Origin: Paraphysomonas bandaiensis
Taxonomy: Eukaryota > Protista > Chrysophyceae
Length of the DNA stretch: 64,000 nucleotides
Direction: 5' to 3'
Assembly (NCBI GenBank): GCA_965644295.1
Contig: CBFFRP010000068.1
Coordinates: 62,001-126,000, forward strand
Of this stretch, positions 55,287-62,786 are shown piece after piece. Made by a program: the position numbers and the translations under genes. Positions within the stretch are counted from its first letter, which is position 1. Each line of letters starts with the position of its first letter. Under the pieces are notes generated by a model that was given only the letters and a program-made list of their open reading frames with translations, did no database searches and had not been told where the DNA came from.

Positions 55287-57304
55287 GACGGAATCTATCG
55301 AACTGCAGTTGTCCGCCGTGACAGATGTTACCGTGCGATCGATGCTTATATATTTTTCTAAATAATTATCGGGGAATTGTCAAACAAAACTTCATTTTAA
55401 ATGTGATAGCCGTGGTTAGTGTTGGTATTTGTTAAGGTTTAGAATTGCTACTACTCATATCGCAATATTCAAACAATTATCCAACCTGAAACGTACATTC
55501 TTGTGTCAAGCAAATTGATATCAGCATAATCGGAAGGGGTAGGTACTCTATCACCATTACAACAAGAATTTGGGTATCTCTGCGATACAAAAATGACAAA
55601 TCCCTCGTACAAAAAGAATATAGGTACGGCTTTTGGCGGGGCTAAAGTTGTAAACAAAAAATTATTATATCCATGCTAAGTAAGTGGGCTCAAACTACAG
55701 AACCGGCATTTCAATAAAATTAACTACCCTAAGAAAATAATGCTTGTTGGATATTGGCATTCACGCATTCACCTGACAAACTCTCGTCTTTCGACTGCTT
55801 AGGAGTAAACAAATTTATCAAAAAATCAGTTGCATGCACAGCTTCTCAAATATAAATTGCATCTTAATAGCAATAATGGTATGTTTGAATTATTCCAGCA
55901 CAGCTTGTATGTGTTGAAATGGTCAAATGATCAATTCCAGTTTGGAGTATCTATCAATTTTGTGAGCATAGATTACTCCACCACTTACCACTCACCACTT
56001 ACAGCTTCATAATACATATCCTACTCATCTACCATAGTAATTTGTATGTATCATAGAGTAAGCAAAGTACGAATGTGTACATTCCATAATTCCACATCAT
56101 TTATAATACCGGTTGATCCGTTGTTGCCACTTCATATAGGGAATAAGTCGCCATAGTTTACTCTGGCGTTACTGTAAACTAATGGTAGAATGTACAATAT
56201 ATAATTTATACAGCAATATAATAAGTAATTCTGTGTTCTGTGTTCTGTGTATGGTGCACTCTGACTGTGTCACATGTTCCACGGATTCACGAAATGATCA
56301 CAGGAGAGAATCTCAATAAATACTGCAGCTTTAGTAACGGAAAGTCGAATTTATTATACTCTTTGTGCTGAAAACATTCTCACTCTGATTAAAAACTCGA
56401 ACATGAACATGTAACTAGAATATAGAAGGCACAGGGTACCTTCTTGATCCTGACAATCAAAAAGCATTGAATGATAGCTAGTAATGATATTATATATTAG
56501 GGACTAGAACTTTATCCAAATGTTAATATGTGGATTGATGTTTATTCAGTTATCCTCTTTCAGTGTAACTGTGTATCTCGTTGTTCAGTTCGTCTCTCCT
56601 AATCATTTTCTATTTGTCATCATACTCTGCTATTTATGTTACGTTGATACATATGTATGTATATCTCAATATGTATAGAATGTCAAGTTGTTTTAAAGAT
56701 ATACACTACAATGTGTACATATCATAGCATCCAGTGTCCATACTGTACAGCAGTATATACACCAGTAGTAGATATGACTCCAATTAACACAAATATCCAT
56801 TGAATGAACCGAGCAGGGGGGGCTCACTCGTATCGGCATCATCTGTACATTTTTGTTCAGAGATGCCTCTAATATTGAGATAATAATTATCTGTATTCCA
56901 GCCGTAGTTGTATTGCAGTAATATAGAAGTTATTTGCTTCAATTTATTTCCGAAAAAATAAGATGCATAAGATTGGCTATCTATGAGTGTACGGCGGTGT
57001 ACACAGCCCAGTTTATATGTCCCTATTTTTTCGTTGGACTGCAATACCAGTCCCCCCAAAAACTACGACCGTACCACCTAAAAAACTGGGTGAGGATATT
57101 CAGATATTCATATTCCCACTTAAAAAAATGAATCTTGTACGATGAAGTATGAATCTTCTTCATATAAACCGCTCATTTAATTGGTTGTTATCTCTGATGT
57201 GAAGTGACCTGACATATATTGAAATCCTCTCTATAGAAGTAGACATTATCATAGTGATTTATAGAGGGGTGCATATATTCACAGATTCACAGTTTCTTAT
57301 TAAA

Positions 57305-60300
57305 ATGTTACAAACTTTAGCAAGATTGAATAATGTAAATGAATGTTTAAAAGATTGTAAAAATGAGCATGTATTAGCAAAATTTCATGAATATTTTATA
57401 CATTCATTATCAAAAGAAGAACAATTCAATCTAATCTCCCTTAATGGACTTAATACTGACTTCTTTGAGGAAGCTACAGTATATATTAACTCATGTTTAG
57501 AAGGGTATACGGACACCAGTGGTATACTTGAGTTAGCACTACCCACTGAGCAGTTGTTAGCTAATGGAGGTGATGATCGTTTACATCTTAAACCTTCAGC
57601 TAATGGAGAGAAAACTAATAAATACAATGGTTCAACTATACCACGTCCTGATATGATATCAAGAGCATCATGTACATGTAGTACTGTCACAGAGAATGTA
57701 AGTGTTTTCTTGTTAGATGTTATTGTTAATGTAATATATACTTTTGTAGGGTTATGAAATCGCGAAAACTGTTCAGCATCGTATCATCACCAAAATTCTT
57801 AACGGTCAAAATAATGCGCTTAGTGAAGAGAATAAAGAGCTTCGGTCCAGGTTGCATGGAGTTCTGGGACTTTCTGAAGATAGCGCAGCTGTTATGTTGT
57901 TCCCATCGGGATCCGACGCAGAGCTTCTGCCTACCACTGCAGCATTAGTTCGACATTATAATATAAATCAACAGCGTGGTATTTCTGTTCCTCGTACAGG
58001 AGGATGCAATACACCCAAGGTTATTAGCTTCATCGTAGCCGCTGGTGAGGTGGGAAGTGGAACATCCAAGGCATCTGGAGGAAAGCATTTCTCAAATGCA
58101 CCTACCACTGCTGATGATACCACAGTTTCTGACGGAAAACTACTACAAGGCTTGTCTCCTGGTGACGTGGAAGTAGTTGAGTACAAAGCCAGAGCCCCCA
58201 GTGGATCCGTGCACCTACAGGAGGCGGACATTCTGGCTAACATCCGTCACAGGCTTGCTTCTGGAGACCACACCTCTGTGGCTATACTTCACGTGGTATG
58301 TGGCACCAAAACGGGATTGGTGTACCCCTCCCTCTCTACTGTTCAAGCAGCCCAGCAAGAGTTTGGGAACCGTTTGCTTGTAGTGGTGGATGCGTGTCAG
58401 CTGCGCTGTCACCTTAGCATGATTAAGCAATACGTGGATATGGGAGCACTTGTTTTGTTCACCGGGTCAAAATTTTTTTGTGGCCCTCCTTTCAGTGGTG
58501 CTGTCACATTTCCAGCATCGATAGCAAGAGAGATTGAGCAACACATTTCTTCCTGTGGTACATCTGAATGTGTCGTGCCGATGGGGCTGCAGAGCTATCT
58601 CACACCAAATGAAGTGCCCTCATGTATGCCACAACTAGCCCAGTTTCTTGTACCCTCCGCGGGTTGTGGGAGAAACCCCTGGAGTAATCCAGGCCTCACT
58701 CTGCGTTGGAGTTGTGCGCTTGATACTATGGAGAAGTATGCTGCCCTTCCGCCATTGGAGGTGGCGGCATTTACGCGTGCGTGGGTGGAAAACATCAGAC
58801 GGCTGGTGGAGCAGGCAGGACCCTATCTGAGCTGTCTTCAAGAAGTTGGGGACGATGGCAGATCCGGGGGTTCTGAAATGCCGGGTGAAATATGCAGCAT
58901 TGTGTCTGTTCTTGCGCATGTTCCTGATTCTTATGGAGCACTCCGCACACTATCATTCGACGAAATGAAGGCTCTATATGTCGATATGACACAAGGCTGC
59001 AGTCCACGCACGTTACTAGGCCAGCCTGTGTTACTATCCTCAGTCAGTGGGCTCACTGTACTACGAATTGCTCTCGGAGCAGATATGGTTGTACGGGCTC
59101 TTCGTCCTTGTAGTATTTCAGGAGTACATGAAACCGCAGGTGTACGTCAAGCCTTTTCCATCTCTACCATACTTCAGGAGGACGCCCAAGTTGTAGAAAA
59201 GTTCCGCTCACTTTGTGAGCGACGATGGCCTCAGATGCGCTTTTTCGGTGCTGTGAGTCCTCACCAGAATGCCCTAGTCAATAGAAATCAGGAAAAAATG
59301 GTGAAATCAGAACGCACTCTCTGTCCTGGGCCAGGGGCGGGCTTCACGAGTGAGTGCACGACAACAGAGAGGCTGGAAATGGCGGTTAAAGCTCTACAAA
59401 AGTCCTCAGGTGGATTCAATGTGGCTGTGCTCTATGACGCGGATGCTCTTCACAACTCCTACCAGCGCGTCCAAGATGTGTTTCCGAAACACTTCACCCA
59501 CTGTTATGCTGTAAAATCTTGTCCCACCCCTTATGTCTTGTATAAAGCTGTGGCAATGGGCCTTGGTTTGGAAGCAGCCTCCATATCGGAGGTTAAAATG
59601 GGACTAATGGCCGGCTGTGCCCCAGAAAAAATAGTGTTTGATAGTCCCTGTAAAACAAAGGAAGAGATATTGGAGGCGTTGCTGACTGGTGTGAGCATCA
59701 ATGCGAACACTCTCAATGAGGTTGAGAAAATCCATGAGGTACTGGCTGAACTGAAATCCAAGGGCCTATCGAGTATGAGCACAATTGGTGTCCGCATCAA
59801 TCCTCTGGTGGGAAGTGGCGCAGTGGCTCAGCTAAGCACTGCTACCACAACATCGAAATTTGGTGTACAGCTGACAGCTGAATCGCGAGAATGCATTCTG
59901 GACTGCTACCAAAAGCACCCCTTTCTTACCATGGTCATGTCACATATTGGCTCTGGAGGTGTTACAGTCGAACAACTATGCACAGGTGCTAAAGCTCTAG
60001 CAGAGTTGGCAGATGATATAGATGCCCGGTGCTGTCCTGATGGTCAGCGAATTTCAACCATTGATATTGGTGGCGGGCTGCCAGTCAACTATGAATCTGA
60101 TGAAGCCCCAGTCTTCTTGGAGTACGCTAACTTGCTACAAATCGTATGTCCCTCCCTGATGATCCCTGGCAGACGAGTTGTTACTGAGTTTGGCAAGTCT
60201 CTTGTTCTCAAGACAGGTGCTGTAGTGACTAAGGTGGAGGATATTGTTACGTCATCTAACCCTGCCGATCCTCTTGTGGCAATAGTTCATGCTGGGGCAG

Positions 60301-60671
60301 ATCTGTTCGTTCGCCCTACTTATGTCCCAGAAAAATTTTTCCATCGCACCGTGCTGTACAGTACTGCTACTGGTGAAGTCTCTGACTCCAAAGGGAAGAC
60401 GGAGGCGTGTATAAATGTATCTCTCGGAGGACCACTGTGTCACTCCGCTGATATAATAGAGACCACACTACCCACCCCTTCTGTTGGGGATTATGTGATT
60501 ATCCTTGACGGAGGAGGCAATACCCTTTCTCTATTCAGCAAACACTGCTCCCGCCTTACCCCAGCGGTGTACGCCTTTAGCATCAAAACCGGTGGTAGTG
60601 AATCGAAAATCATTACGCATTGTGTGAAAGATGAAGAAACAATCGACAACTCCGTGCAATTTTTTGGATAG
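57305..60671 (+). CDS. Two-domain PLP enzyme fusion: fold-type I aminotransferase class V-like domain plus diaminopimelate/ornithine decarboxylase-family domain (about 1104 aa; exons 57305-57697, 57750-60671)
   Basis: One GT-AG intron (57698-57749) joins the frames; N-domain GGDDRL..NKY..PRPD, FPSGSDAE, VVVDACQLR, TGSKFFCGPPFSGA, LRIALGA; C-domain CYAVKSCP, EAAS..E, FDSPCKT, RINP, SKFG, HIGS, DIGGG, EFGKS, GPLC. Confidence 0.9.
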
Positions 60672-61114
60672 TTCCTGCAATGTGTTCTAATATTATTTCA
60701 TTGAATGATACATGGCTTTCAATCTGTTATATTGTGTAACTTTACTATCACATTTTATACAGTGACTGCGTTTGTATGGATATTCAACCTGGTGAGTTTT
60801 GTCGCTTGTAAAGTGATATGATGATAAATAATCAGTTTTGTTGATCTACGTCTACTCATTGCTGTGTGTTGCGAGGTAAATTCAATACAATCTAATTTAG
60901 TCCTTGTCAATTTGGTGCTATTACCTAGTCCAGGAGTTGAAAATATAGTTTAAATAATTCATGTTTTCAGCTTGCATTGACGAGGATGGTGACTAGATCC
61001 TTATTATATTCACCTTGGCATCAATATATGAATGCAGATTTTTAGTTATTTCTTACTTTGACTAGGTTATTACACCAAAATTAGTATTACTAAGTTGAAT
61101 AATGTATCATATAT

Positions 61115-62786
61115 CAGGGATAGGGAACAATATATTGCAATATATTGTAAAATATATTGATTGGTGGACTGGTCAAATATTCCATCAATAGTGTTTCTGT
61201 TAATAGAGCTCACAATACTATTGCAATATATTGCAATCAATATTATGATAGTCATATAAGAGAAGATCCTCAACTGTATGGTGCAAAATATACGCCTCTG
61301 TATACAAATATCCGGAAAATAAGAAAAAAAGCCTATTTTTGATGTTATTTTCTATTTTTTATGTATCGCCAGCTCAAACAGCACTCTACACCTCTCCACA
61401 TGTATGTACAGTACTTCTCTTAATATAGTATATATATCCTATAGTGACAAGAAGAGACAACTGAATGATGAGTGCATACAAGAGTAGGGACATTTACCGC
61501 TGATTCTGGTAACACCGTATTACTTGTGTGAAATTGTCGAATGTTATAATATATATTAGGTGTACCCCTAGTTGGATGTGCATCTCACCGACTAAATCTC
61601 GCTGTCAATGAACTCATTGGCAGCAAAGAGAAGAGGAATAACCAAGGAGATGTGACAAGATCTGACGAAGGCATTAGGCCTCTTATTCGCAAAGTAGACC
61701 TACTAATGGGGAAGTTGAAGCAGATTAAGAATGCTGCATTGCTACGTGGCCAAACCAGTCTGCTACCAGAAAGGGTAAATGTCACAAGATGGTCTTCTAT
61801 GTTTCAGGTTCTCGTAAAGTGGATGCGTATAAAAGATCATGTATTAAAAATTGAAGACTTACCGCTTGCAGTTACTGATATGATTCCTACTCCTCGACAG
61901 AATACCGAAATAATCGCCCTTGTAGACGACCTGAGGAAGTTTGAAAGCGTCTCGAAATTGCTTCAAACTGGAGGATCAAGTCAAGTGAATCTTTATGAAT
62001 GCCGGAACATATTTGATGGCTTATTGAGGGACTTTAGGCCAAAGTATCCACTATCTGCTTTACAGAAAAACAGTCCCATTGTTAATGATCCGAATTTCGA
62101 GAATGGAATTGCAAAACTCCAAGCAGGCGAAGAATTGGACTTGACAAGATCTGAGAAAGATGCTGTTAGAATATATCTCCGTTCAGACAGTGATTATTGC
62201 AACAATACAGAGGATGATGAAGCTGAAGTTGGCTATGCGGAAAAAATTCTTCAATCAGCTCAAAAACTTAAGAAGCGAAAAGTTGAAATATCTAAGTACA
62301 GGTGCACGAGTCATGTAGTATGTACTTCCAATACGTGTGAACGCCTGTTCAGCGCAGCAAAACTGATTATATCAGTGTTGCGCAAACGTATGCATCCTAC
62401 TACACTTAATATGCTGTTGTTTCTGAAAGCTAACCGACAGTTGTGGCCGGATGCAAGCATATTTCAATCAATATTGAATGAATATGGTGATGATGATGTC
62501 ACCGATGATGGCTCAGAGGATGAGTATGAGGAAACTTTTAATTAGTTAAGAGTAGTGGGTTTGATTATCAAGTGACCTTAGACCTTATAAAATATGGCAA
62601 GTACTAAAAATGAAAACTACGGATGTGTTTACTTACTGATTAGTCATACTAATATATTGCAATATATTGTACAATATATTGCAATATATTGCAATAGTAT
62701 TGTAGGGCCGGTTTAAAAAATCCATCAATACTATTGATGGAACGCTACCTAACAATAGTATTGCAATATATTGTTCCCTATCCCTG
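61115..62786 (+). mobile_element. hAT DNA transposon, internally deleted (1672 bp)
   Basis: 28-bp perfect TIR CAGGGATAGGGAACAATATATTGCAATA; 8-bp TSD TCATATAT at 61107-61114 and 62787-62794; subterminal AATATATTG repeats. Confidence 0.96.
61560..62545 (+). CDS. C-terminal half of a hAT transposase
   Basis: GCASHRLNLAV (CxxH), TRWSS, C-terminal TSNTCERLFSAAK..RKRMHP..L.MLLFLK dimerisation domain; N-terminal BED finger and first catalytic aspartates not evident. Confidence 0.85.

Follow-up and report, generated by a model that had tools for sequence, protein, structure and literature searches.

A two-domain PLP protein of Paraphysomonas bandaiensis couples an undescribed, probably class-V-like domain to a LysA-like decarboxylase and may form a small amine

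Results

We analyzed a 64,000-nucleotide stretch of the chrysophyte Paraphysomonas bandaiensis (GenBank assembly GCA_965644295.1, contig CBFFRP010000068.1, positions 62,001 to 126,000 of the forward strand; hereafter the window, in whose numbering all positions are given). One gene on the + strand, which frame analysis resolved into two exons, encodes a protein of 1104 amino acids (aa; 131 + 973) in which an orphan pyridoxal 5′-phosphate (PLP) domain (the N-domain) precedes a group IV PLP decarboxylase (the C-domain). Translation starts at the ATG at 57305, the first ATG within a transcript contig from run X1 that begins with a 5′ untranslated part (57278-57304). Exon 1 (57305-57697), supported by frame analysis and by X1, encodes the 131-aa N-terminal segment of the orphan domain. 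It is followed by a 52-nt, phase-0 spliceosomal GT..AG intron (57698-57749), with GTAAGT at its 5′ end and TTTTGTAG at its 3′ end. The intron lies within the N-domain and not at the junction of the two domains. Exon 2 is an uninterrupted open frame (57750-60668) that encodes the remainder of the orphan fold-type I (class-V-like) domain (57750-59225), an interdomain linker that AlphaFold2 predicts to be partly helical (59226-59348), and a fold-type III decarboxylase domain of the GPLC[F/H] subfamily (59349-60668). The stop codon TAG (60669-60671) and 3′ untranslated part occupy 60669-60789 of the X1 contig.

The X1 contig, of 3463 nt, joins 57278-57697 directly to 57750-60789 with 0 mismatches. 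The splice joint (57697>57750) has a depth of 336 in X1, also with 0 mismatches, and recurs in run X4, a second labelled organism; the unspliced intron is retained in the DNA-like run X15. In addition, a contig from a polyA marine metatranscriptome (59145-60656) bridges the domain junction. Since the spliced contig and the polyA contig both cross this junction, the two halves are on one mRNA. The gene is real and transcribed, confirming the original prediction that one spliced open reading frame of 1104 aa encodes a single polypeptide with two different PLP folds. Separate transcripts for the two halves would have spoken against that prediction; one transcript spans both.

Exon 1 is strongly AT-rich (GC 0.32; GC at third codon positions, GC3, 0.18), while exon 2 (GC 0.49, GC3 0.44) falls within the range of the genome's other coding regions. 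The native-like GC and GC3 of exon 2 give no compositional signal for recent horizontal transfer. The length of the single large exon, once thought unusual, is not exceptional: elsewhere in the window, open frames extend for 1429 aa and 678 aa.

We characterized the N-domain using homology searches and fold predictions, which here and below were run separately for exon 1 and exon 2. All motifs that had been named beforehand are present, namely GGDDRL (G88), PRP, VVDACQ (D345, Q348) and TGSKFFCGPPFSGA (K372) in the N-domain and CYAVKS (K720) in the C-domain. Exon 1 encodes a conserved N-terminal segment specific to this family (GGDDR, NKY, P, R.SCT), here GGDDRL (G88-R92), Y107, P113 and R120-S122-C123-T124, and BLASTP matched it to homologues at 38-59% across the motif region. 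A word search recovered >200 relatives of the N-domain, and their alignment (A1) contains ~50 near-invariant positions, all of which the window protein keeps. In exon 2, the order and spacing of the motifs are of class V type: the phosphate loop PSGSDAE (57903-57923), GKHFS (His at 58086), H312 (58290), D345-A-C-Q348 (58389-58391 and 58398) and T-G-S-K372-FFxGPPFSGA, with the Schiff-base K372 at 58470-58472. K318 (58308) and R570 (59064) lie in the same domain. Across 87 diverse sequences, the Schiff-base Lys, the Asp, the Gln, the phosphate loop and the C-terminal Arg are each at least 90% conserved, and all are found in the window protein. The 27-residue spacing from D345 to K372 thus separates two positions that are both conserved at this level.

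The N-domain matched no Pfam family at E <= 1 and did not reach the threshold of PF00266 (Aminotran_5). It matched no NCBIfam model, and neither the single sequence nor the 87-sequence family profile matched any PDB entry. With hhalign and NifS/SufS-like proteins drawn from five bacterial genomes, PSGxDAE, HFS, DACQ and SKFFxGPPFSGA fell in register with GTEA, EHHS, DAxQ and SxHKxxGPxGxGA, in a match that is weak (probability 2%, E 0.025). The predicted structure has the three-layer alpha/beta/alpha large domain and the small domain of fold-type I and appears superposable on solved members. Per-block AlphaFold2 predictions were less certain near residues 490-510 (predicted local distance difference test score 56-58), with exon-2 residues 495-505 at low confidence. 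As no conserved Cys follows K372 among the near-invariant columns, the family lacks the hallmark of cysteine desulfurases; the only conserved Cys in it are C123 of the SCT motif (Ser in the bacterial protein P0114) and C347 of the DACQ motif. Language-model features placed the domain closest, among named clusters, to the phosphoserine-using enzymes SepCysS and SepSecS (score 0.87), which we treat as a lead only. As judged from sequence, the N-domain is probably a fold-type I, class-V-like enzyme that would bind PLP and belongs to an undescribed family, with motifs that seem closest to those of the NifS/C-S-lyase/AGXT group. That the family is unassigned and also proteobacterial agrees with the original account of it, as alphaproteobacterial loci carry it and no family model matches.

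The C-terminal part is the only region matched by Orn_Arg_deC_N (1e-34) and Orn_DAP_Arg_deC in Pfam. It has the TIM-barrel and beta-sandwich domains of a group IV decarboxylase, which match PF02784 and PF00278, the PLP Lys (K720; 59514), the His (His863; 59943), the Gly-rich loop, the Glu (Glu944; 60186) and the active-site Cys (Cys1028; 60438). In LysA and ornithine decarboxylase (ODC), an acidic residue binds the distal amine of the substrate; in LysA this is the Glu of Cys-Glu-Ser, while the Arg and Tyr of RPxLY bind the distal carboxylate. The window protein differs at the first of these sites, as CES is replaced by CHS (GPLCHSAD; His1029, at the LysA Glu position, 60441) and by CF(G/A/S) in nearly all relatives, most of which have GPLCF. 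In addition, EPGR is EFGK, with Lys947 (60195) at the position of the Arg, and GAY is GGN. In the RPxLY region the Arg is retained and the Tyr is displaced by one position (FVRPTY); Arg986 is encoded at 60312. The domain scored 161.7 bits against the TIGR01048 lysA model, below its cut-off of 297.9 bits, and the ODC motifs GPTCDGLD and EPGRY are absent from the fusion protein.

The same 62.5-Mb genome contains a multi-exon canonical LysA with RPSLY and CCESGD (contig C284:13468-14880), a canonical ODC with GPTCDGLD (C314:2229-3296), two ODC-like paralogues with GPTCDSAD (C396:40030-41127 and C49:63104-64192) and DapF exons (C89). Since LysA, ODC, its paralogues and DapF are encoded separately, the fused domain represents a distinct paralogous subfamily and not the lysine enzyme. 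By its sequence, then, the C-domain belongs outside the lysine pathway, in a dedicated, LysA-like branch of the group IV decarboxylases. Several of the substrates proposed originally, diaminopimelate (DAP), Lys, Orn, Arg and 2,4-diaminobutyrate (DABA), carry a distal amine and seem unlikely, given the exchange of the acidic amine-binding residue for His or Phe. The concern that the fusion is simply a common form of lysA was partly justified: the architecture is common in ochrophytes, but no characterised member was found in the literature and its C-domain falls below the lysA cut-off. Stand-alone members of the same subfamily (36-49% identity) occur in brown algae, Skeletonema, Nannochloropsis, cryptophytes, Lotharella, Hondaea, Amoebophrya, a coral and several bacteria; its gene neighborhoods in Bacteroidales gave no functional clue.

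The same fusion, with the N-domain first, is present in dozens of stramenopile and Chromera proteins of 950-1570 aa, including those of Ochromonas (MMETSP), Phytophthora, Pythium, Aphanomyces, Albugo, Nothophytophthora and Chromera velia. The architecture is thus not special to this genome but widespread in ochrophytes, oomycetes and Chromera, and it is not new: a Phytophthora sojae and P. ramorum protein was listed in 2009 as a decarboxylase with an N-terminal "conserved domain of unknown function" (Morris et al., PMC2705460). A Phytophthora homologue (P0034) is 34% identical to the window protein in the N-domain and 40% in the C-domain, and the two proteins share a clade in both domain trees. 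In Scytosiphon the two parts are on different contigs, so the fusion is not obligatory. The N-domain family is also present in a fungus. In one Aphanomyces euteiches fusion protein (P0057), alignment of the C-domain showed a Ser in place of the PLP lysine, with the His, Gly-loop and Cys motifs missing or gapped; either this domain is degenerate or the gene model is faulty.

Pairing of the orphan family with decarboxylases is not limited to this architecture. The same two domains occur in the reverse order in P0077, and the orphan domain is fused to a group II (fold-type I) decarboxylase in P0098, P0113, L166 and an Atlas cluster of 118 bacterial proteins. On the N-domain tree (a quick search with Shimodaira-Hasegawa-like approximate likelihood ratio support only), the three fusion types form three separate, well-supported clades (96, 99 and 100). 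Since the clades are separate, these data point to independent fusion events. The C-domain tree, read without the L156 row, mirrors the N-domain tree. In it, stramenopile and Chromera proteins form one group that includes the brown-algal stand-alone proteins, the reverse fusion clusters with alveolate-type sequences, and bacterial decarboxylases encoded next to the orphan lie outside a well-supported eukaryotic clade. Both trees are unrooted and place eukaryotic clades beside bacterial clades; a transfer from bacteria may have taken place and would then be ancient.

In bacteria, the two families are neighbors. At >60 of 80 alphaproteobacterial genome loci, the orphan gene is followed by a gene for a 415-aa protein and then by a group II decarboxylase gene, often with overlapping stops and starts; in some genomes the gene order is permuted. 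The 415-aa protein is ATP-grasp-like, as it has a weak RimK match and belongs to Atlas clusters that carry the name ATP-grasp. Carriers of this triad (loci L008-L087, e.g. L073:9929-14276) include Bradyrhizobium, Rhodopseudomonas, Stellaceae and a metagenome-assembled genome of Chthonomonadaceae. The group II partners are closest to DABA decarboxylase and PanP and score far below the cut-off. In Ca. Parabeggiatoa and its relatives, a TauE-family permease gene and the orphan gene precede a gene for a group IV decarboxylase from the same subfamily as the C-domain; this type of orphan is 29% identical to the window N-domain (1e-49). At four further loci (L094, L104, L111 and L117), the orphan gene overlaps or abuts a group IV decarboxylase of that subfamily. 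Around other metagenomic orphans, the immediate neighbors are divergent PF00282 decarboxylases and PF14397 "sugar-transfer associated" ATP-grasp proteins, and some of these orphans adjoin Wzy_C and GDP-mannose dehydratase genes (also L007). The original argument, that the fusion is a Rosetta-stone clue to the function of the orphan domain, gains from independent fusions in both orders, from fusions to a decarboxylase of another fold and from the conservation of operons in bacteria. The search for relatives and the per-domain trees that had been suggested likewise revealed the fusion in dozens of proteins and trees that are congruent.

Some members of the orphan family have other settings. In Bradyrhizobium, the triad directly follows flagellar hook genes. 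On conjugative Sinorhizobium/Rhizobium plasmids, a gene for a 511-aa family member overlaps the stop of a giant non-ribosomal peptide synthetase/polyketide synthase (NRPS/PKS) gene (L187:9037-10572 and L188:7950-9485), with a phosphopantetheinyl transferase gene nearby and no decarboxylase gene. One Logan contig encodes a 1015-aa protein (P0078) in which PAPS_reduct and glutaredoxin domains, the architecture of an APS reductase, are joined to the orphan PLP domain; it was seen once and could be an assembly chimera.

On both sides of the window gene, the sequence is repetitive. The summed depth of X15 is ~16,400 at 56900-56970 and ~4,900 at 60989-61100, versus 99 across the gene, and numerous contigs diverge at the two flanks. 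The flanks are high-copy dispersed repeats; a repeat comparison of one flank with the other gave no match. Downstream, a 331-aa open frame (61550-62542, + strand) has a weak, sub-cut-off match to a hAT transposase dimerisation domain (E 9.5e-4) and may be a transposase remnant.

Discussion

With moderate confidence, we propose that the fusion is a two-step PLP module that makes a small amine, with two apparently intact PLP enzymes in one cytosolic-looking polypeptide. The N-domain would make or reshape an α-amino acid in a reaction of the transamination or β-substitution/elimination type, and the C-domain would then remove the α-carboxylate, yielding a small primary amine. Because the C-domain keeps the basic residues that contact a distal carboxylate in LysA, with Phe or His in place of the acidic residue that would hold a distal amine, the substrate side chain is probably neutral or anionic rather than basic. 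Since the N-domain family is paired with decarboxylases of two unrelated folds, the partners would share a small-molecule pathway in which decarboxylation chemistry matters and not a particular protein. In bacteria, the presence of an ATP-grasp partner suggests a further step, in which an amide bond would link the amine to a carboxylate; the Campylobacter capsule system discussed below is a precedent. A single protein query did not find the alphaproteobacterial ATP-grasp partner in the genome of P. bandaiensis, so there the amine may be a free metabolite. Of the original idea of a fusion devoted to amine synthesis, the coupling of the two domains stands, while the basic substrates seem unlikely. 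The analysis shows the gene model, the single mRNA, both folds, the conserved cofactor-binding residues and the coupling of the two families in evolution; which step comes first, what type of reaction the N-domain carries out and what kind of substrate is used are inferences.

Several observations weigh against this proposal. The profile-profile match of the N-domain to NifS-like proteins is weak, and the complete fold assignment rests on a bacterial homologue that is 29% identical and deviates from the family consensus at several positions. No family member of known activity was found in Pfam, NCBIfam, PDB or the literature, where we covered the oomycete fusion, microalgal taurine, oomycete DAP epimerase and clusters of PLP and ATP-grasp genes; no paper was found that assigns a function to the fusion architecture. 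Gene fusion and gene neighborhood reveal coupling, not the order of steps or sequential chemistry. In the Campylobacter capsule pathway, a PLP transaminase and a PLP decarboxylase encoded beside an ATP-grasp ligase act in parallel (PMC12409886). Lastly, other branches of the family lie beside NRPS/PKS genes without any decarboxylase, and the orphan family is thus functionally diverse.

We weighed four other explanations. The decarboxylase could act first, on a common amino acid, with the class-V-like domain then transaminating the amine to an aldehyde, much as PhnW or a taurine-type amine:pyruvate transaminase would, or the two domains could make two amines in parallel. This is rather unlikely, as the motifs are more NifS/C-S-lyase-like (DAxQ, K-x-x-GP-x-x-GA) than AGXT-like and the usual third partner in bacteria, an ATP-grasp ligase, needs an amine and not an aldehyde. 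We give a slimmer chance to a variant of the lysine pathway in which the N-domain, as a PLP-dependent LL-DAP epimerase, takes the place of DapF, and meso-DAP is then decarboxylated by the C-domain. Epimerisation by a class-V enzyme has a precedent in isopenicillin N epimerase, and LysA-type enzymes act on a D-centre. Oomycetes, which carry the fusion, are reported to lack dapF (PMC2705460). Nonetheless, the genome carries DapF exons and a canonical LysA, which rule out replacement of DapF as a general role. The shortfall of the C-domain against the lysA model and the replacement of the amine-binding Glu by His (Phe in most relatives) also count against this variant, as do the occurrence of the N-domain family in a fungus and its pairing with group II decarboxylases, which are L-specific.

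That the N-domain is a non-catalytic module, regulating or oligomerising an ordinary decarboxylase, would fit a family without a known activity and a bacterial member (P0114) that has lost several consensus residues. We consider this very improbable, since the Schiff-base Lys and the other residues listed above as conserved across the 87 sequences are all present in the window protein and the family also occurs stand-alone and beside NRPS genes. Finally, brown algae encode the two parts separately, on different contigs, as would be expected if two adjacent genes had been read as one. Such an artefact is hardly credible here, as the open frame of exon 2 is continuous, the spliced contig matches without mismatch and the polyA contig crosses the junction. 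An aminoethylphosphonate route, suggested by similarity to PhnW and involving phosphonoalanine decarboxylation, was set aside when the TIGR02320 model revealed no PEP mutase in the genome, a draft from which a gene may be missing by chance.

A more specific form of the two-step module is a widespread, unrecognised route to an amine in marine algae, oomycetes and some bacteria that starts from an amino acid with an anionic side chain built by the N-domain. The N-domain might, for example, make cysteate from a serine-derived intermediate and sulfite, which would be decarboxylated to taurine; alternatively, O-phosphoserine or a related compound would give phosphoethanolamine. We regard this as speculative and grant it a small chance. 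The hints are the basic residues kept and acidic residue lost in the C-domain, the P0078 protein, the TauE-family permease, the SepCysS/SepSecS score and the decarboxylation of serine phosphate in Campylobacter. Should the amine prove to be a metabolite that algae hold in abundance (a sulfonate, an ethanolamine derivative or another osmolyte, for instance), the route would close a gap in oomycete metabolism as well as in the marine cycles of carbon and sulfur.

Whatever the amine, the N-domain family is large: it occupies hundreds of loci across bacterial genomes and metagenomes and is found in many protist lineages. We found no family model or paper that describes it, even though its sequence marks it confidently as a PLP enzyme. 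Because the family has repeatedly, and apparently independently, been paired with decarboxylases of two folds, its role can be narrowed to amine biosynthesis. The results also bear on annotation, as fusion proteins of 1000-1400 aa are often labelled "diaminopimelate decarboxylase", a label that is probably wrong.

Comparison with known systems

The N-domain is 9-16% identical to class V enzymes (NifS/IscS/SufS, C-DES, AGXT and PhnW). Its family differs from them in the extra GGDDR...NKY...P...R.SCT segment and in being 150-300 residues longer. In desulfurases the nucleophilic Cys is in the C-terminal part, where the N-domain family has no conserved Cys. The C-domain, in turn, departs from LysA (e.g. 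Helicobacter pylori 2QGH) in the CES, EPGR and GAY motifs, as described above.

A fused L-2,4-diaminobutyrate aminotransferase/decarboxylase of Vibrio, in the norspermidine pathway, also joins a fold-type I aminotransferase to a PLP decarboxylase that carry out consecutive steps to an amine. The Vibrio protein combines a class III aminotransferase with a group II decarboxylase and uses a substrate with a distal amine, while the window decarboxylase lacks the acidic residue for such an amine. In the HS:2 capsule pathway of Campylobacter jejuni, the amine module consists of the transaminase Cj1437, the serine-phosphate decarboxylase Cj1436 and the ATP-dependent amidoligase Cj1438C (PMC12409886). 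Bacterial relatives of the N-domain are similarly encoded together with a PLP decarboxylase and an ATP-grasp ligase, and some of these triads lie by polysaccharide genes; the likeness is one of gene content. Unlike the parallel action of the C. jejuni enzymes, the two activities of the window module are proposed to act in series, and the ATP-grasp query had no match in the window's genome.

The oomycete fusion (P. sojae Ps128804/Ps129804 and P. ramorum Pr72228; PMC2705460) has the same architecture as the window protein and is homologous to it in both halves. Morris et al. (2009; PMC2705460) listed it as one of three candidate DAP decarboxylases, without a fold, an analysis of partners or a function. 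The fusion itself was thus already known; what is new here is the strength of the coupling between the N-domain and decarboxylases.

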